Assembly: GCA_040285825.1 (NCBI GenBank)
Contig: JAUPSS010000004.1
Location: 930,001 to 994,000, forward strand
Length of the DNA: 64,000 bases
Direction of reading: 5' to 3'
From: Eukaryota sp. TZLM1-RC
Taxonomy: Eukaryota > Protista > Metamonada: BaSk clade
The position numbers were made by a program, and so were the translations under genes. The notes under the pieces are model-generated. The model saw nothing but the letters and a program-made list of their open reading frames with translations, made no database searches and had not been told where the DNA came from. Each line of letters begins with the position of its first letter. Position 1 is the stretch's first letter. This document shows, one piece after another, positions 11,135 to 59,774 of the stretch.

Positions 11135-12098
11135 ATCTTATTACCATTACCTGGGTAAATATCAATCAAAAATGTCATGAATTCTCTTGAACGTTCTTGA
11201 ATACAAATTGCATGAACGTGTTTTATGATTATCACTGTGTTTTACCCATTATTACGTAGAATAATTTACGTATTATTACCTTTACGTGTCATCTGTAACA
11301 ATAAAGAATAACAAGATGTTTATTAAATTTCATTGGCCCTTATAAAGACCATCACTAGTGAAGTCTATACTAGACTAATTGTCCACAATACAACAATAAT
11401 TGATCATTTTTGTTACAAACGTTTCATTAGTAGCACACAGTGTTAAATCTTCGTGGTACAATTGTAACAAACAGTGAAGACTCTGATGACTGGTTTTCAC
11501 CTTTGTAAATCTTGTTCAGCTGTAGCTTGTTTAAGACCTCCAATACGTGTTCCAGCACAGGTAATTAATCTTTCTTCTATCCCCTTTTCAATTTGTTTGC
11601 TGAAATTTTACCATGAATTAAAAATAAAGAATATGGGATGTCACACCGTTGGGGAAATCTTTCTTCCTTAAAGATAAAAATTATTGTTTTCCAACTTCAA
11701 ATTTCGTCCTTCTATCCTGAAAAAAAAAATTGTTCGCAATTTATCTTTAAAAGGACGTTTTGGTTCCGCTAAGCAATGTTTGTTGTCATCAAAAATTGCT
11801 GAATGTAATGAAAACACTGTTGCTCAGCTTAAAAGTCTCCATCTTTTTGAAGCTTTTAAGTGTGCCAAAATCTGATAATGTCAGTTATTAGAGCGACAAT
11901 CTCCCAATTTACGAATCAAATTTGATTAAAAACAATTACAAGGATCATATCATTCAAAGGTAGAAATTCCAGAAATATGTGAAAATAAATTTTTACATTA
12001 TCTTATTACCATTATCTGATTAAATATCAATCAAAAATGTCATCAATTCTCTTGAACTTTTTTGAATTCAGGTTGCATGAACGTGTTTTATGATCATA
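11135..12098 (+). repeat. ~100-bp diverged direct repeats (11135-11235 and 11999-12098)
   Basis: atcttattaccatta..aaatatcaatcaaaaatgtcat..ttgcatgaacgtgttttatgat in both copies. Confidence 0.75.
11485..11880 (+). mobile_element. N-terminal (pre-RT) fragment of a CRE-like family A element
   Basis: CxxC..RPPIRVP and GRFGSAKQCL..LH match 54590-54950. Confidence 0.8.
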
Positions 12099-13199
12099 AG
12101 TGTATTTAAACTATCACTATGAATATTCTATTACTGACACGGCACATTGTGCTAATAAATTTTCATAATTTACCTGTTACTAGCTCATTTTTTCCACACC
12201 AAATGTCTTCACATATCCCCCTTCTTGACTATTCTTGATGCATTTGAAGACAAAGTTCGAATTATAAGAAAACAGTTGCTACATCCGGATGACATTCGCC
12301 ATTTGTTTTGCTTTTTCAATCAAATACACTGTGTCAAACTGAATGAAATCGCCGACATTCTCGCTTTTATACAACCCTTTGTTCCACTTAAGCTTTGTAA
12401 GACCGGTAGCAAGGAATTCCTGCGACCACTGATTTTCAATGTTTTGGTTTTGATGTGTTGAGGTATTGGGAGGTTGTGACATATTTGAATCTTTGAAATA
12501 AAGACCTTAGTATCATTATTCGACTGGATATCAATCAAGTATTTCACCGCTTCTATTAAAGTATCTTGATTCTTGTGTTGCTTGTAAGGAATCTAGGTTT
12601 AGGTTTGTTTGATCTTAATGTATATCAAAATCCTCAAGTTTTGCTTTGAATAGATCTTGGTTGTTCTAACTAATCCTTTTTTGCCAAAAATCCACGTTCA
12701 ATAACAAAAAACAGAATGAAATAACCAGCACAGAGACACAATAATAGACCAGCTTTGGGATTTGTATATCTTGCTAAAGAGTGATAGAACGGGTGTTGTG
12801 ACTGCCAAAAAATATGTGTGTGCAAGAGGTTCGTGACATGTTTATGCTGGGGTAAGAAGTGAATGCATGAATTAAAATGTGAAACTTTATACGAACACAT
12901 GGAATCTACAAACACCAAGATAAAACAAACAACTGCTGTGACTTGCCACAATTTCATCAAATTTGACGCCAGATTGCTGATGTCTGGAAAGAAACCATTA
13001 AAGCAGGTCTAGTATCAATAGTAAATGTATCTACTTACCAGTTTGATCATGTTTTATTGTTTTGTGGATGTGAAAAGTTGAAAATAATCCAAATTTTATA
13101 TGTAACTGAAACTAAAAAATCAATCATTTCTGATTGTCAGTAAACCTTCTACTTTCAGTAAGGTCTATGAAGTCATAGGCACGTACATGTTCTCTTCAT

Positions 13200-38303: not shown

Positions 38304-38859
38304 TGAAAAGTGTTGATGCTAACTTTATCTTTTTCAATTTATCTTTTTTTCTATTTTTTCCCTTGATTTCAACTCTGATGATCATTATTTTCACTAGTGA
38401 GAAAGTCAAAAAGCGACAAAGCAATTATAATGATTGTATATACACAGTGGAAAATCATCCATTAAATTAGAAAAAACCTCCAATTTCAGAAATTCCAAAG
38501 ATGTAAAATTCTCATAATGATTGTTAAATTCAAGGCTCGTGTCATAGTTTTGTGGATGCACAAAGGTCAGTAAAATGAACAAGATTTGACACACAAAAAT
38601 CTTGTGTCTACCACTAATGATAGTTTTACGTATTCAATTCAATTTACAAGGAAGAATTTCTATTAGGGGAAATTGTGACAACACCGCTTATTTTCCAAGT
38701 CCCTGCAATCATAAAATGTGATACTTCTGGAGAAAAGTTGTGAGCAATTAAAAACCAAAGACTTCTGAACAAATTCGCTAGTACTTATCCAACAATTAGA
38801 AAGTTTTATTTCAGTGAGCAAGTGTGAAATTCTAAATACCTTTTATCAAGATTAAATGT

Positions 38860-39385
38860 AAAAAAGTTGATAAAAGAATGGCTCACTACCATTCAAAAGG
38901 AGTCACCCTGTAGTTGAAATCAGTATCATGCTTATAATCACAATCAACAGTACGTTGAAATAATAAAATTTGTTTAATTATTCTACTTTATTGACATTAT
39001 CATTGACTTGAACATCAAACGTTAACCACAAAATACTTAAATCCAAAAATTTTCAACAAAGGGAATTTTCATTGATCACATGTGTTTATATAGATTTTAT
39101 GATTGCACAAATGAATTTTGAAAATTAGGTGTGGAAAATTGAACTAAATTTCTCAAAGATGGTTATTATTACTTGGATTATAAACATGTGAAACGATATG
39201 TATTTGTAAACATGCAAAGAAATTGAAAAATTTGGTAAATAGTCATACTTAAAGTGAATAATTCTGAATTGCATTGTTTGAATATCAATCACTATGGTCA
39301 AATGACAGAACTTGTTATACAAGGATTATCACTATCTTTTCCCAATAACATTTCTTCTTTAAATTGTTGAAATTTATCATCACAC
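38860..39385. repeat. ~520-bp diverged dispersed repeat; partner at ~59158-59720
   Basis: aaagaatggctca..aatcagtatcatg..gtgaataattctgaatt..cccaataacatttcttctttaaattgttgaaat in both. Confidence 0.8.
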
Positions 39386-39559
39386 TCGAAATTGATGATT
39401 TGCGGGGGTTAGACGTGGTATACTTAAACGCAATGTAATTTATTACGAAAGCAAAAGGGTTTCCTTCGAATTAAGGGCTACAGAGCATATGAATATGATA
39501 AGACGATTATTATTAGGTATGTTCATCTCTAATTTTAGGCATGTTTAATAAATTTTTTT

Positions 39560-39935
39560 CTCTCTTTCACCATGCAAAACGAAGTTCCATCAGGACTTTT
39601 TCCCAGTATAAACAGTGCCTTTTCTTGCCTTTTAATCTTGGGCTTTTAGCCAAGGGTTTGCATTAATGAAAGAGTGCAGCAAAGAATCTTCCTGTCAGTT
39701 TGTTTGCGACCGTAGTTACCTTTTTAAGCCTGTCGTTTCGAGTCAGGATAGGCAGCGTAAGGGCTACACTAAGAACACTGGTTGTCTCTTTACTGTTTTG
39801 TGCTTCACAATTGAATGTTCTTTTGCCACTGAAAAAGGGTGACAACATAACCATGCTTTTGTCTCCAATCCAGCGGCACATCCGGTTCACAAACAGGTCA
39901 ATAAAGGGCAAAAGACCTACATTGTTGATCACCTC
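39560..39935 (-). mobile_element. Possible MULE SWIM-region remnant
   Basis: Frameshifted IDL..RMC..W..LCCH pattern. Confidence 0.35.
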
Positions 39936-40049
39936 ATAGCAGCAACTCCTCCTCGATTTATTTGTATGGGTTTAAGAGTTCCTTTGCTGGATCGAATCTG
40001 ATTTCTCAGGATATTTACAATATATCGACGAGTTTAAAGATTAGTAGAG

Positions 40050-40345
40050 CTGCCACCATTGGAGAGCTACTAATGGAGTTTATGCTACTTCATGAGATGA
40101 TATTTCGCATTTATCCTGAACAGACATCATACAAATGAGGTCCAATGATAATCCTGAAGTAGTCCATGCTGTCAGAGGCAGACCAGCAGTAGCACGGAAT
40201 CATAACCCACTTTCAACACAATGAGAACCCTCTGGATTTGAAATTGCACGTCAAGTAAGAACATGTCCACCAGGACAACGACTATGTGGACAAAGTCACG
40301 AGCAGGCCACAATGCACGTACTTGTCCAAAAAGAAGACAATAATA
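40050..40345 (+). mobile_element. MULE-like C-terminal remnant
   Basis: RGRP followed by a ..GHNARTCP knuckle. Confidence 0.5.
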
Positions 40346-40569
40346 AAAGCATTTAATTACACACTCTTATGCTCTATTAGGTATGAAAAGTATAGATAAA
40401 TAGGATCTTAGAGATGGAAAAGAAGGAGAAACAAATTTATTGAACATGCCTAATAAACGCCTATAAAAAACAAAATAATCACATGAACTATCAATAATAA
40501 TAAAGCTAGTCAAGACTAACAAAGCCCTTTCTCTTTTTCAAGCGACGAGGCCTCGGAACGACGGAAGGA

Positions 40570-40895
40570 ATAGTCTTCTTTGGATTACTACTAAAGCAAT
40601 GTTAATCCATAGTAATCCTCTTGCTTTTCCTGATGCTGACTCATCCATCTTAATTTCCACAGATGCCCCTGATAAAGCAATTGCTGGCATTATCTGGAAG
40701 AAACTTGAACCTTGACCCCCTGGTACTTGCTTAACCAAACGCAAAGTTGCCCATGTATCTTTTTACTCTCGAATCCTGACTGCCTCTCAACAAAACTGGT
40801 CTACCATGCAAAAAGTGCTCTTTGCCATAGTAATGACCTTAAATCAGCCCAACCCTTCCTCCTTTTTAGTGACTAAGCATTTTACCTTTTTCTGA
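40570..40895 (+). mobile_element. Ty3/Gypsy RNase H fragment, second family
   Basis: LISTDAPDKAIAGIIW..RKVAHVSFYSRILT..WSTMQK; homologous to 45300-45545. Confidence 0.85.
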
Positions 40896-40904
40896 AGAAA
40901 TTTT

Positions 40905-41280
40905 GGGATAGTCATACAGGAACAACTGGTTTTTATTAATGAAGTTAGTTTAAGACTAGGAAAATTACACCGAAGGTATGGCAGATCACCTAAAAGGACC
41001 CCCTTGTGAGTGAAAAAAGACCTCAGTTCAAAGAAAGGCAAATAAGCTTTGACAGTTTTCGCTATTTCTGTGACGGGAGTTCTTGCATGCAGCTTACGGC
41101 GCAGATATTTCAACAGAATTGCTTTCACTGAATTTCTGAAGAGTTTACTGAATGGAGATCTCCTAGGAGTGTTTGGTACAGCCAAGTCTATTATCATCAT
41201 GGACGGTTGTGGAATTCACCGCCATAGAGGTATAAAAGAAGGTTTAAAGTTGTCTGGTGTCGACAGCTTAATTTTGAAGG
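40905..41280 (+). mobile_element. IS630/Tc1-mariner DDE transposase remnant
   Basis: LVFINE..RRYGRSPK (first catalytic D mutated), AIS..GVL, F.EFL, IIIMDGCGIH. Confidence 0.8.
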
Positions 41281-41377
41281 TTGATGTCCGTAGGGGCGAC
41301 GTCGGTGAACGTATGTCCTGCTAACTGAGACGTTTTCTTCAGGCGAAAAGCAGGGCTTGATTGGTGGCACTGCGCGA

Positions 41378-41990
41378 AAAAAAATCAGCCGACCTTACAG
41401 AAATCAAAACTTATATCGAAGCAAAAGAATTATTCAATCTAAGAACACGAGAGTTCAACCAGCAACCTTAAAACAACCTCAGCAGGAATACTCAAACATA
41501 AGAAGATCAGAAGACCAAATGATTAATCAATTCAAAAGAATATTTGGATTCTCTTCTGATGTTGTTATTAGATTTGGTGATTCGAGAGTTGCTGCTTATA
41601 AAATCAAAAGTTGGGCACCTACTATTAAAGAAAAATTATTGAGAAAGCTGTTCAAATAAGCCAGATATACCGTCCTTTTAATTGATGAATGCCGAACAAG
41701 TAAGTATTGTTCTGCTTGTGCTGAATTTGGTCAAATCAGAATGAATTCTGAAGAACACGGTATCAAAAGGCCTAGACTTGTGGATATAAGACGTTTGAGA
41801 GAAAGAAGAAAATATTTGAAGTGGTGGTATGCATGAGACATAAAAAAAGACATTATAGTTCAAAACACGAAGGAGAAAAGTCAACAGTAGACGCAAATTC
41901 AATTGCTTGTGGACTACGTCGATGTTCAAAGTGCAAAACATGGTGGGATAGGGATTTTTTACCATAAATAGATTACTTTTGGTTGTATGA
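41378..41990 (+). pseudogene. Fanzor (eukaryotic TnpB-like, Fanzor1-type) C-terminal half, decayed
   Basis: KSADLTEIKTYIEAK..REF; NIRRSEDQMINQFKRIFG..DVVIRFGD..APT..LRKLFK*ARYTVLLIDECRTSKYCSAC; CGLRRCSKCKTWWDRD. Confidence 0.82.
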
Positions 41991-42009
41991 GGCAGACTTG
42001 TCTCACAAA

Positions 42010-42400
42010 TATCATGAAGCCCGCCAAGTCTCAACCTTCTCTTTCTCATTCAGAATTTGCTGCTCTTTTGGAAGGTCTGGAAGATTCCAACATGATTGCT
42101 GATTTCAGCGGCATCAAGCAGAATTGCCTTATCGCTATAGAGTTGGTCATGGCAGATTCTGTGGAATTTGACCGAAATCTAGTGTTGACTTTTTCATCTG
42201 ACCATTTTCCAGCTTCAAGGACACGAGACAAGACCTCTTTTTTCATGCTTTGTTCTGCTTTGTCCCAGAACTGAACCTTTCTCTAAGCGATCAGGCGTGA
42301 CTGGACATTTAAAAAAACTTCACCCAGATGTCAGCAATGACGTTTTGAAACAGTCTGGACACATGAAATGCGGTTGTGGAGACATCATCCAAGTTGATTG
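42010..42400 (+). other. Decayed ORF with a zinc-finger-like end; possibly the 5' end of a non-LTR element
   Basis: TGHLKKLHP..MKCGCG. Confidence 0.3.
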
Positions 42401-42405
42401 TGTTG

Positions 42406-42577
42406 TGTTAGCTGAGGCTAAACGCCACTTTCCGGTTTTGGAGAGTATCACGTGTAGCATCACGTGATCAATAGTTTAAATTCAGTTCTTGTTTAATTTA
42501 GTTTGATTTTTGGTATATTTACAAAAGAGCCCCATTTGAGAACACCCACTTTAAAAAAAGAGCCCCATTCATAAACA
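42406..42577 (+). mobile_element. LTR-like sequence (TGTTAGC...AAACA) related to 49927-50078
   Basis: tgttagc..taaacg..actt.cc..ttttgga.agt..atcacgt..tttaaattc shared between the two. Confidence 0.6.
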
Positions 42578-42689
42578 TCCTTTTCAATATAGACCCATTG
42601 TTCTATAACGTCGATGTCTTCCGAAAACAACAATATAGACACTCTCAAGAAGTACCAGTTACATGTGGGCGCATTCTTCCTCGATAATG

Positions 42690-42890
42690 CATGGCTGTTA
42701 AAGGTAAGAGAGTTACCCATTATAGCAATGCTGAAACAAATGCGACTCAAAATGACAGCCTGGATCAACGACAGAAGAAAAGAAGCAAGACAATTGTCAG
42801 AAAACCTCAAGATTACTGTAGTACCACCAGTGTACGAGGCAGTAAAGCAGAACCTAAGACGTGGAAGAATGATGAGGGTCTCTATTTGTG
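42690..42890 (+). mobile_element. MULE transposase C-terminal fragment fused in frame to gag
   Basis: VRELPIIAMLKQMRLKMTAWINDRR matches the MuDR R.LPI..L..IR..M.W...RR pattern. Confidence 0.65.
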
Positions 42891-43057
42891 GTCTATCCAT
42901 CCCATACATATCCGACCCATCGGCCAGAATTGAAGAACTCGAATTTTCAAGAGGGGTATTTACACTCCCAATGTCGACCGTAGCTAACGCCTTCTTAACA
43001 GGTCTGGACAACTTGGCATAAACGAGCAATTTATTCGAGATTTACGGTAAACAATCT

Positions 43058-45874
43058 TTGTGGAACGACAAACTAGTCTCGTTCAACGATTTAACCAAAG
43101 TGGCCAGAGAGAAACTTTTGTCTTGGATGCAAGCCGCACCGAACAAGGAAACCATCCAACTACTGAGAAAAGAGGCGAACAAACCTAAATTAGAAACAGG
43201 AGAATTTCATTCGTCAGAAAGGAAAAGGAGAACCGACCCTGAAGACCAACAATTCCCTCAATTGAAAAAAGGTAAACACACCAGAGGGGGACAGAAATTT
43301 TGTACCTTTTGTCAAATCCCAGGTCATATTATAACAGAATGTGGGGACCCAACCTGTAGTCGCTCATTGGTCCCTATGAATCAAAGAAAAGGCGCCGGCT
43401 ATGGTAGAGGCCGTGGAAACTTTAGTAGAGGCAGTAGAGGCAATTTTAGAGGCCGAAGTAGAGGCCGTGGTAATTTGTATAGAGGAACTAGGGGCCGAGG
43501 TGGCCGTGGTAATAGAGGTAATACATATCGTGAATGTAACGTCCTTAATAACAAGTTTAATAACAAAAACAAATCGTCGCATGTTACAGCTCCCGAATTG
43601 AATCAGATTTGTTCTTCTACTCAATCGGACAATTCAGCTCAAACAGCCCTCTTAAATCCACTCTCTTTCTTGAACATTGGAAATAGCAACATAAATAATC
43701 AGATTAATGTAATAAATAATACAGAAAGAGATTTATGCAACCGAACAGGTAACAATGCTCCTTGTATAAACCACAACAGATCCCAGCAGCCTCAGTTTTT
43801 AGAACTTCAGGTAAGAATTAACAGTACAGTCATAAAAGGCATGATAGATGCAGCTGCATATTGTTCTGTCATTTCCCTAGACCTAGCAAATCTGTGTTCA
43901 ATGTCCATCAATGAAAACGACATCACACAATTCATCCCTGCTAGTAACGTATCGACCAATTCGCTTGGAAGTGCACAAGGCATTTTGACGTTCAATGTTG
44001 GTAGCATCGCGAACCAAGTTTCAATAAATCATACTCTCCCCGCAATCCCGGGTTCAAACAAATTTTACATGTTACAAAAACTTGGGTTATTGACATCTGA
44101 CCGTTTAGTAATTGTACTAGACGAAGAGCGCCGCACTTTACTAAATGCTGAAACCGAATTTGATAACAGAATTAAAACTCACCAAATCGGTCATGTAGAA
44201 TCTATTCCCAGCAGTGAAAAAGATTTTACCCAGCAATTAGATAGATCTGGATGTGAGATTAAATTAGATGATAGTGAGTATAATAAGAGTTTGTCTGATA
44301 TATTAGGTCAATACAAGGACGTATTCAGCGAAACGCCCAATAAAGAAGGCATCGATTGTCCACCCATGTCAATCCCCTTTTATAATCCTAACGCTATTGT
44401 ACATAAACCAGCAAGGGGTCTCAACCCAAAGAAATTACAAATAGCTAACCAAATTTTTGACGAATTAATCGAAATGGGCTATGTAATTGAATCGAACTAT
44501 AAATTCAGTTCCCCTATTGTATTAGTAATATACCCTGATGATCGAAAACCGAGGTTGACAGGCGATTTCAGCGGTAAAGATGGTGTTAACGCTCTTACTA
44601 TTCCAGTTGAGTCTAACTTACCATTAATTTCGGATGTTTTGGAATTTCTAAGTCAAGCCAACTACATCGCCACTTTGGACCTTCCAAAAGCTTTTTGGCA
44701 GATGAAAGTCGCTGACGAGGATATTGAAAAGACATCCATCTCTATCTCTGGCAGATCCATTATGTTTAAAAGGGCATGTTTCGGATTAAAGAATATCCAA
44801 GCAATTTTTCAAAATGTTATGATGGAAATTTTTCAGATAGACGGAGTGTTCATATACATTGATGACATAATCATAATTGGATCAACCCTTCAACAATTTT
44901 TAGAAAGAATTCAAAGAGTACTGCAATGCGCAAGGGATAGAAGAGTCAACATTGGATTGAGAAAATGTAAATTCGTTACTGACAAACAACCAATTGACAT
45001 TTTAGGCAGCGCTTTCCAATATAGACAACGTAAAATTAGTCAAAAACGAGTCGATGCTTTAATTAACATCCCTGCTCCAAAAACAATAAAAGAAGTTCGG
45101 TCATTAGTCGGCTCAGTCAATTTCATCAGAGACTGGCTCCCAAACATTTCACAACTGATTGCACCCATAAACGAATTAATCAAACACAAACAACGTCGTG
45201 TCAACTGGGAAACCAAACACGACCAACTATTAAAACAAATAAAAGAATTGATCATTAATCATATGCCTCTGGAATTACCATCACCAGACAAACGCATTTT
45301 AATAAGCACCGATGCATCAGACATCGCAGTAGGAGGAGTTATCTGGCAAGAGGTCGAACCATATGCACCCACAGGAACTGCATTAAAAGATAGAAAAGTA
45401 AAACCAATCTCTTTTTACAGTAGAATATTAACTGATACTCAAAAACGTTGGTCAACATTACAAAAGGAACTATACGCAATATTATTAATACTAACAGAAA
45501 GCCATTTAGAAAGCTTCCTCATCACTCGACACTTAACCATATTCACCGACCATAGAAATATTGCGTTCCTCGCCACAGCTCCAGAAAAGAACAGAATAGT
45601 CAAAAGATGGTTACCTATTTTATCAGAATTTGATTTTGATATAGTACATGAGAAAGGAGAAGACAATCACTGGGCAGACATGATGTCACGAAACATTGAT
45701 GACAATTCAGTAATACCAGAATTAAATCACATCAGTCACCCACACGATCCTTACTGGCACGGTGAAATTCCACCCCCAGATGACGATTCCGACTATGAAA
45801 GTCCAGAACCAATCCACATTCTCGAATTATCAAGACAGATTTACCAATCTTTTCAAATTGGTTATCCAAAGTAA
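43058..45874 (+). CDS. Gag C-terminus (CCHC, RGG box), protease, RT and RNase H polyprotein
   Basis: CTFCQIPGHIITEC, IDAAA, LDLPKAFWQ, FGLKN, YIDD, TDASD, TDH, ADMMSR; frameshift near 45830 into the integrase frame. Confidence 0.93.
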   Translation: MWNDKLVSFNDLTKVAREKLLSWMQAAPNKETIQLLRKEANKPKLETGEFHSSERKRRTDPEDQQFPQLKKGKHTRGGQKFCTFCQIPGHIITECGDPTCSRSLVPMNQRKGAGYGRGRGNFSRGSRGNFRGRSRGRGNLYRGTRGRGGRGNRGNTYRECNVLNNKFNNKNKSSHVTAPELNQICSSTQSDNSAQTALLNPLSFLNIGNSNINNQINVINNTERDLCNRTGNNAPCINHNRSQQPQFLELQVRINSTVIKGMIDAAAYCSVISLDLANLCSMSINENDITQFIPASNVSTNSLGSAQGILTFNVGSIANQVSINHTLPAIPGSNKFYMLQKLGLLTSDRLVIVLDEERRTLLNAETEFDNRIKTHQIGHVESIPSSEKDFTQQLDRSGCEIKLDDSEYNKSLSDILGQYKDVFSETPNKEGIDCPPMSIPFYNPNAIVHKPARGLNPKKLQIANQIFDELIEMGYVIESNYKFSSPIVLVIYPDDRKPRLTGDFSGKDGVNALTIPVESNLPLISDVLEFLSQANYIATLDLPKAFWQMKVADEDIEKTSISISGRSIMFKRACFGLKNIQAIFQNVMMEIFQIDGVFIYIDDIIIIGSTLQQFLERIQRVLQCARDRRVNIGLRKCKFVTDKQPIDILGSAFQYRQRKISQKRVDALINIPAPKTIKEVRSLVGSVNFIRDWLPNISQLIAPINELIKHKQRRVNWETKHDQLLKQIKELIINHMPLELPSPDKRILISTDASDIAVGGVIWQEVEPYAPTGTALKDRKVKPISFYSRILTDTQKRWSTLQKELYAILLILTESHLESFLITRHLTIFTDHRNIAFLATAPEKNRIVKRWLPILSEFDFDIVHEKGEDNHWADMMSRNIDDNSVIPELNHISHPHDPYWHGEIPPPDDDSDYESPEPIHILELSRQIYQSFQIGYPK

Positions 45875-58615: not shown

Positions 58616-59774
58616 CATTTACACACACCTTCAGACGGCCCAGACTCATCCCTATTGCTAGTTTGAAGCCTTCTTTTGTTCCCTTTTCCCAGTGTACTTT
58701 GAACCTCTTCGAATTCAAATATGCATCGAAAGCACTCTGAAGAACTCTTTTCTTTCTTCAAGACAAAAGCTAATAACTATAGTATGACCTTTATTGGTGA
58801 TAGTGTACGGATAACTTAGGCATAAGTTTACTTGATCTCGATGTATATCAAGAAACTCATTTTTTTTGAAAAGATCTGGGTTGTCCTAATTGATCCTCCT
58901 TACCATAAATCGATTGCCTTTGAGTTCAGTTGTCGGCACTGGTTAACTTTAAATTATAGTTCATTATAGTTTAAGTATATTTGTGCTCTAGCACTTAAGT
59001 GGAAGGAACCCCTTTTACCTTCGTAATAAATAATTTTATGTTTTACCTTGGTATGAACCCTCACCACATATCATGCTAGTAATCCCAACCAAGTCATTTT
59101 CTAGCTAGAGAACTTTCTGATCTCAGAAGATGACTCAAAGACCAAGATCAATATTAACTGTAAAAAAATTGATGAAAGAATGGCTCATTCTCATTCAAAA
59201 CGAGTCACGTGTTAGTTCAAATCAGTATCATGTTTATAATGACAATCAAGAATACATTGAATTAATAAAGTCTGTTTAATCCTTGTACTTTATTTACAGA
59301 ATCATTTACTTGAACATCATACGTACACCTTAAATTATTCAATAATTATTAAATTAATTCCAAAATTGTTTATTAAATCATTTATCAACAAAGGGAACTT
59401 TTAACGATCACAGGTGTTGATATAGATTTTGTGCTTACTCAAATGATTTTTTGAAAACTAGGTGTAAACTATTTAACTCAAATATTTCAAAGGAGATTAT
59501 TACGACTTGGATTATACAGATGTAAAAGGATAAGTACCTGTCAACATGCAAAGAAATTGAGAAAATTTGGTGAATAGTAATAAATCAAGTGAATAATTCT
59601 GAATTCCACTGTTTGAATATCAATCAATATGATCAAAAGACAGAACATGCTATCCAAGAGCAAACACTATGTTTTCCCAATAACATTTCTTCTTTAAATT
59701 GTTGAAATATACCATCACCTTCGGAAATTTTGTTTTATTCGATGAAATTTATTTTGAACGCTAACATAACATTA

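Follow-up and report, generated by a model that had tools for sequence, protein, structure and literature searches.

A dead fragment of a Fanzor1 gene, truncated at both ends and set in a mosaic of transposon scraps, is the best explanation for the sequence described here, and its adjacency to a DDE_3 transposase remnant would reflect a pile-up of transposons at one site rather than the decay of a single element; we put the probability of this reading at roughly 0.6. The window analyzed (i.e., the whole 64-kb stretch of DNA) belongs to contig JAUPSS010000004.1 of Eukaryota sp. TZLM1-RC, a source strain assigned to the free-living metamonad Skoliomonas litria (PMC11603281).

Identity of the Fanzor1 Fragment

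The C-terminal half of a gene for Fanzor1, an RNA-guided DNA nuclease of eukaryotes and a rearranged-RuvC homolog of TnpB, occupies positions 41362–41964 on the plus strand of the window, where it is read over three frames and is matched by A1, a profile of the P0003 protein family that was built solely from relatives in genomes other than S. litria. The retained span runs from a degenerate RuvC-II strand through an alternative Glu and a zinc ribbon to the RuvC-III Asp. P0003 itself, a 387-aa hypothetical protein of Skoliomonas sp. GEM-RC (GEMRC1_007298), was found by an exhaustive search with the 58-aa third piece of the fragment (E = 5e-4). It passes Pfam’s threshold for PF07282 (Cas12f1-like TNB, formerly OrfB_Zn_ribbon), and every piece of the fragment is collinear with it. 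As gathered by word search, the P0003 family has six members in GEM-RC, one in TZLM3-RCL, and three in metagenome/Logan assemblies, and its 644-aa member P0012 possesses the RuvC-I motif IVAIDPGK. The closest relatives of the fragment are P0003 and its paralogs P0005–P0010, with the TZLM3-RCL member, RCL1_004497, being P0006. Identity to P0003 is 42% over 184 aligned residues, with the breaks read through as X, and falls to 31–35% for the other family members, including a second S. litria copy at locus L010.

An hmmsearch with A1 over the six-frame translation of the window, cut into 1,981 stop-free segments, returned four collinear matches and zero others, all four being on the plus strand. 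Specifically, profile positions 109–141 match segment 41361–41468 (E = 6e-4), positions 149–208 match segment 41309–41656 (E = 1e-15), positions 212–264 match segment 41660–41833 (E = 8e-9), and positions 264–300 of 361 match segment 41776–41964 (E = 8e-5). Ordered matches of this kind to four segments are far above chance. A1 likewise matches the solved Fanzor1 structures of Spizellomyces punctatus (SpuFz1, 8GKH; E = 1.7e-28), Parasitella parasitica (PpFz1; E = 4e-18), and Guillardia theta (GtFz1; E = 6e-15), and since the same profile recognizes both the window pieces and these structures, the assignment to Fanzor1 is correct. A first-pass annotation of this DNA had called a Fanzor remnant and proposed a search against Fanzor/TnpB profiles; the peptides it quoted are all present at their coordinates, in three plus-strand frames.

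Single-piece searches were less telling. Pfam PF07282 matched segment 41660–41833 alone only weakly (E = 0.062), phmmer against PDB with single Fanzor pieces gave zero matches, and a word search with the 100-aa ORF, length-filtered such that full-length Fanzors fell outside, found as its sole match the ORF’s own gene model, P9112_006197. A second copy of the fragment was sought across the 64-kb window, and none was found.

Catalytic Layout and Lesions

The fragment is made up of four pieces. The first (41362–41468, frame mod3 = 0; ..KKSADLTEIKTYIEAKELFNLRT..) corresponds to the helical region upstream of RuvC-II and is identical to P0003 at 11 of 13 aligned residues, including KELFNLRT; leftward of its start at 41362–41384, paralogous read contigs part from the window. 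The second (41477–41656, frame mod3 = 2; ..EDQMINQFKRIFG..VVIRFGD..APTIKEKLLRKLFK) holds EDQMINxFK, the degenerate RuvC-II strand VVIRFGD, and then APTIKEKLLRKLFK, with Gly (RFGD, 41576–41578) occupying the RuvC-II site at which canonical TnpB has Glu. The third (41660–41824, frame mod3 = 2; ..LLIDECRTSKYCSAC..) carries an alternative catalytic Glu (41687–41689, within LIDECRTS), located 37 residues after the Gly and aligned with the invariant E267 of P0003, followed by the first CxxC pair (CSAC, 41708–41719), and it ends with a basic insert. Finally, the fourth piece (about 41827–41964, frame mod3 = 1; ..CGLRRCSKCKTWWDRD..) includes the second CxxC pair (CSKC, 41923–41934) and the RuvC-III Asp (41953–41955, within WWDRD).

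An inert RuvC-II residue combined with a downstream, alternative Glu is the rearranged catalytic layout that characterizes Fanzors (PMC10530073), and the fragment, with Gly at the canonical site and Glu downstream, has this arrangement. The two catalytic residues that the first-pass annotation had read as retained, the Glu at 41687–41689 and the Asp at 41953–41955, are indeed both kept. The segment between the CxxC pairs, which had also been described as long and basic, proves to be a family trait that is common to P0003, P0006, P0010, and SpuFz1. Like the fragment, the Fanzor1 proteins of S. punctatus (SpuFz1, 8GKH), P. parasitica, and G. theta have GD(W) at the canonical Glu site, the alternative Glu in a (D/N)E(Y/C)RTS motif, a zinc ribbon (CxxC...CxxC) interrupted by a long insert, and W(N/D)RD. 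In contrast, the fragment retains about 200 of more than 600 residues in a broken frame and lacks RuvC-I, WED/REC, the C-terminal tail, and a guide-RNA region. Members of the P0003 family share the basic insert between the zinc-ribbon halves but are longer than the fragment, possessing the N-terminal Fanzor half and a PolB-type exonuclease-like ORF upstream, both of which the window copy lacks.

The damage is distributed along the whole fragment. One frameshift lies between 41468 and 41477 and another near 41821–41841, and an in-frame TAA nonsense codon on the plus strand (41657–41659) replaces a Lys of P0003. Profile positions 1–108 and everything upstream of them are missing from the window, such that the RuvC-I and WED/REC half is gone, as had been recognized earlier for RuvC-I; this half is present in relatives, including P0012 and the L010 copy. 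On the other side, Fanzor homology stops at ~41960 (profile position 300 of 361), with unrelated sequence beyond, leaving the fragment with neither the C-terminal NSxINIY..RP tail nor any 3′ guide-RNA region. An Rfam search over 39400–43100 gave nothing meaningful, and an Atlas search with the piece 41972–42271 returned only noise. Because of its two frameshifts, one stop, and truncation at both ends, this copy is dead, able neither to cut DNA nor to supply a guide, in agreement with the earlier view of it as non-functional.

The DDE_3 Transposase Remnant

Upstream of the Fanzor fragment, on the same strand, lies a Tc1/IS630-like DDE_3 remnant (40896–41274) that is read in a single frame and covers residues about 155–277 of about 360. 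In a tblastn search, the full-length, 362-aa DDE_3 gene of GEM-RC (L004:13035–14120) aligned with 40908–41276 at 36% identity (E = 8e-16), which bears out the IS630/Tc1 transposase remnant called in the first-pass annotation. All seven DDE_3 family members compared match the remnant, at 31–37% identity, and an HMM of the family detects it with E-values of 4e-9 and 6e-16, the best DDE_3 homology reaching 1e-22. General models applied to segment 41046–41324 were weak on their own (Pfam DDE_3, E = 0.013; NCBIfam IS630, E = 0.017).

The remnant contains two in-frame stops (41007–41009 and 41043–41045), and its first catalytic Asp has been replaced by Asn (40938–40940). The second catalytic Asp is kept (41202–41204, within IIIMDGCGIH). 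The N-terminal DNA-binding part is missing, as is the third acidic residue, the remnant stopping at 41274; a complete D,D,E triad is thus lacking. In the DDE_3 family, the second Asp is spaced 34 residues from the Glu, which is Tc1-like. Skoliomonas DDE_3 proteins of the Tc1/mariner-IS630 type (P0014–P0020) resemble the remnant in their catalytic core and second Asp motif. In contrast, only about 125 of about 360 residues survive in the remnant, for which the search for TIRs was negative. The DDE_3 neighbor is a genuine transposase fragment, but as dead as the Fanzor piece.

Most DDE alignments end at 41276. Two queries, P0016 and P0015, aligned past this point, up to 41468, and this extension was rejected as spurious because read contigs show 41274–41358 to be a different repeat and because 41385–41468 fits P0003 far better.

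The Surrounding Mosaic

The two remnants belong to a mosaic of roughly 4 kb that consists of same-strand scraps from at least five kinds of transposon, in the order Gypsy RNase H, DDE_3, an 85-bp repeat piece, Fanzor, and a MULE-like fragment, after which an intact Gypsy element follows. The Gypsy-type RNase H fragment (40590–40892, plus strand; Pfam RT_RNaseH, E = 1.3e-6) is 50–54% identical at the amino acid level to the pol ORF of the window’s intact Gypsy (45242–45544) and directly abuts the DDE_3 remnant. This junction is spanned by an exact read contig (40752–40944), exact contigs also span the junction between DDE_3 and the 85-bp piece, and since both are bridged in this manner, neither is an assembly artifact. 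Downstream, the MULE-like transposase fragment (42593–43018, plus strand) was recognized by tblastn against a SWIM-domain gene of S. litria (L007, 15956–16165; E = 1e-5), while a Pfam search on the same fragment gave nothing.

The RNase H, DDE_3, and first Fanzor pieces (40590–41468) are tightly joined and share the frame mod3 = 0; as the foreign 85-bp piece lies among them, this common frame is probably a coincidence. Just upstream of the mosaic is a 919-bp unit (39535–40453) that has 28-nt inverted repeats of 93% complementarity at its ends (TTAGGCATGTTTAATAAATTT...), with a degenerate CCHC gag-knuckle-like stretch near 40242–40340 and no clear target duplication. Also upstream, a 550-bp stretch (38845–39393) is 79% identical at the DNA level to a retroelement region at 59147–59729.

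The first-pass annotation had placed the transposase about 100 bp from the Fanzor remnant, and this distance was right, but the interval is not an empty spacer. Within it, 85 bp (41274–41358; no strand assigned) derive from an unrelated repeat present in multiple copies, and over this piece the depth of read contigs from the same sample is 20–40, versus 2–3 on the flanks, and the contigs that cover it enter different sequence at both sides. Since 41274–41358 is another repeat in the read contigs, the DDE_3 remnant ends at 41274 and the Fanzor fragment starts at 41362–41384. The piece is GC-richer and reaches 10–15 times the single-copy depth in DNA read contigs. Within it, at 41311–41342, lies a 32-nt intron-like sequence (GTATGT..GCTAACT..CAG) that is spliced out in the NCBI model P9112_006197. 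Neither the window nor the fetched loci yielded the parent repeat, for which a gene with an intron and many copies, or an intron-spreading element, would be candidates.

Fanzor Loci and Repeats in Skoliomonas

Four copies of a Fanzor-ending repeat in GEM-RC (L002, L004, L011, and L012) terminate on the right at one fixed point. The exact shared right end is ...GAGTTGAGAACCACAG, and the left parts vary by deletion or 5′ truncation; L011 is the longest copy, at least 11.5 kb, and L012 is 5′-truncated, starting inside the Fanzor gene. In L004, a 760-bp, MITE-like element (11526–12285) with perfect 31-nt terminal inverted repeats (CAGGAGTTGGAAAAATTGCATTGCCAATTAA) has inserted just outside the Fanzor repeat, 10 bp from its right end.

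Every Fanzor subfamily sampled in Skoliomonas has, directly upstream of the Fanzor gene and on its strand, an ORF resembling the 3′-5′ exonuclease of family-B DNA polymerases (L001:8818–9957, L002:7888–8609, L005:7062–8345, L011:7428–8507, and L010:8410–8643). These ORFs are 28–37% identical to one another, versus only about 24% to the host PolB, and some of them retain the ExoII and ExoIII motifs.

On the window’s own contig in S. litria, a nearly full-length Fanzor (L010:8934–11134) represents a different subfamily and is closest to P0012. Its RuvC-I motif is present (AASDPGK), but Lys stands in place of the alternative catalytic Glu (LIDKFRTS). Some 5 kb downstream of it lies a scrap from the C-terminal part of a separate Fanzor (L010:16040–16279).

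One Element or Accumulated Neighbors

Tc1-type transposons are known to carry Fanzor1 genes. Bao and Jurka, in 2013, reportedly described Mariner/Tc1-borne Fanzor1 elements. Such elements have also been described by Jiang et al. (2023, PMC10530073), and the association of the Fanzor1c clade in particular with Mariner/Tc1 (PMC10530073) speaks for the idea that the two remnants once traveled together. The alternative to accumulation is that the window preserves the relic of a composite Tc1/IS630-Fanzor transposon, in which a transposase and then a Fanzor lay on one strand within one TIR pair, with the transposase tail, the spacer, and the N-terminal half of Fanzor having been lost through internal deletions and a small insertion. 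We regard this as a possible, though unlikely, history. Like the described elements, the window has Fanzor1 and Tc1-type pieces side by side on one strand, 88 bp apart, and they are the sole Fanzor and sole DDE_3 pieces in 64 kb, such that their lying within 90 bp of one another would be unlikely under random placement. Unlike those elements, the window has foreign DNA between the pieces, both of which are fragmentary, and no common TIRs were found. The separator is an unrelated, multi-copy repeat with flanks of its own, and further scraps crowd the site, with the Gypsy RNase H abutting DDE_3 and the MULE-like piece lying downstream.

Relatives provide evidence on both sides. In its L002 and L004 copies, the GEM-RC Fanzor-ending repeat carries DDE_3 residues 1–69/80 on the same strand as Fanzor, near the left end that the two have in common; a full DDE_3 gene lies 1.5 kb past this repeat in L004; and in S. 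litria L010, a DDE_3 gene lies 9 kb upstream of the Fanzor of the other subfamily. However, L002 and L004 go back to a single event. Overall, DDE_3 occurs within 10 kb at four of the eight Fanzor loci (the window, L010, and the pair L002 and L004, which counts as one event) and is absent within that distance of the Fanzor loci L001, L003, L005, and L012. In the reverse direction, only one of the four loci fetched around DDE_3 genes (L006) has a Fanzor within 10 kb, with none in that range of the full-length DDE_3 genes at L007, L008, and L009.

Boundaries that would define a composite were likewise sought. A search of the window for inverted repeats or TIRs enclosing 40896–41964, with a TA duplication, gave none, nor were TIRs found around the DDE_3 and Fanzor genes in L006 and L010 or in the flanks of four full-length DDE_3 genes. 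The ends of the GEM-RC Fanzor repeat showed neither TIRs nor matching termini, and the left end of that repeat was absent upstream of the full-length DDE_3 genes. The first-pass annotation had proposed testing whether intact copies are linked to the same transposase within TIR/TA boundaries; in the loci sampled, linkage is inconsistent and enclosing TIRs were not found. Owing to the 85-bp separator, the flanking scraps, the lack of TIRs, and the inconsistent linkage in relatives, a composite is not established.

Accumulation at a common site is the reading we prefer, and the caveat of the first-pass annotation, that in such a patchwork the two might be neighbors by chance, describes what remains the more likely history, given the 85-bp separator, the mosaic, and the lack of TIRs. 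Taking the identity, lesions, and boundaries of the Fanzor and DDE_3 fragments as observed, we infer that transposons would have piled up at the site and that deletions would then have whittled them down, leaving DDE_3 beside Fanzor.

Two further explanations are far less probable. In the first, the mosaic would be the product of a single stitching event or process with one orientation, for example filler DNA, template switching during repair, or capture by a mobile element. Its fragments are indeed 85–600 bp long with tight junctions, all four that can be assigned a strand (RNase H, DDE_3, Fanzor, and MULE-like) are on the plus strand, and the GEM-RC Fanzor repeats have a fixed right end with variable left parts; four co-oriented pieces, however, amount to a mere 1-in-8 coincidence, and no second copy of the mosaic was seen, leaving this explanation highly improbable. 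The second, that the chimeric model P9112_006197 (P0001, 142 aa), which strings together the DDE tail, the 85-bp piece, and the ORF that covers the second Fanzor piece, is a real, expressed gene with one spliced intron, has in its favor the NCBI model itself and the textbook signals of the 32-nt intron, but it is scarcely credible, as the protein belongs to no Pfam family, has only itself as a cluster mate, reads the Fanzor region over half of its length in a frame that does not match the Fanzor family, and terminates at the very TAA that interrupts the Fanzor frame. P9112_006197 is flagged as an annotation artifact in which three unrelated repeat scraps have been stitched together.

Age and Significance

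Stop codons are scarce in both remnants. Against a background of one stop per 16 codons, the Fanzor coding path contains 1 in 198 (P = 6e-5) and the DDE coding path 2 in 127 (P = 0.015). Identity to the nearest relatives is 42% for Fanzor and about 36% for DDE. Stop depletion together with an identity of only 36–42% to relatives suggests that the parent lineages diverged while active and that the copies in the window died fairly recently.

Paralogous read contigs with about 88–90% identity cover 41362–41469 and 41683–41914. In the latter contig, the TGA found at 41834 in the window is missing, and a gap of 5 nt at 41841 would keep the frame open, suggesting that a better-preserved copy of the fragment’s Fanzor subfamily resides elsewhere in S. 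litria. The first-pass annotation had supposed that this lineage carries, or carried, a Tc1-Fanzor family, possibly with intact copies; less broken copies do seem to exist, as seen in these contigs, but the origin of the window’s two remnants in one element is the part that was not borne out. A bolder proposal, to which we give rather little credence, is that S. litria harbors an unannotated Fanzor1 subfamily, 42% identical to its nearest relative (in GEM-RC), that includes a less broken copy and was, or is, carried with a Tc1/IS630-like transposase. If true, this would be the first case of a Fanzor lineage borne by Tc1 in a metamonad, and an intact copy would become available in which RNA-guided cleavage could be tested.

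The host of the fragment is a metamonad, and a literature search on Fanzors and metamonads found no paper linking the two. Taken by itself, the copy in the window is a decayed member of a known family and fairly ordinary. On the question of whether metamonad Fanzors travel with Tc1-type transposases, the window contributes one ambiguous data point. The value of the copy is that of a marker, indicating that a further, divergent Fanzor1 subfamily once lived in S. litria.
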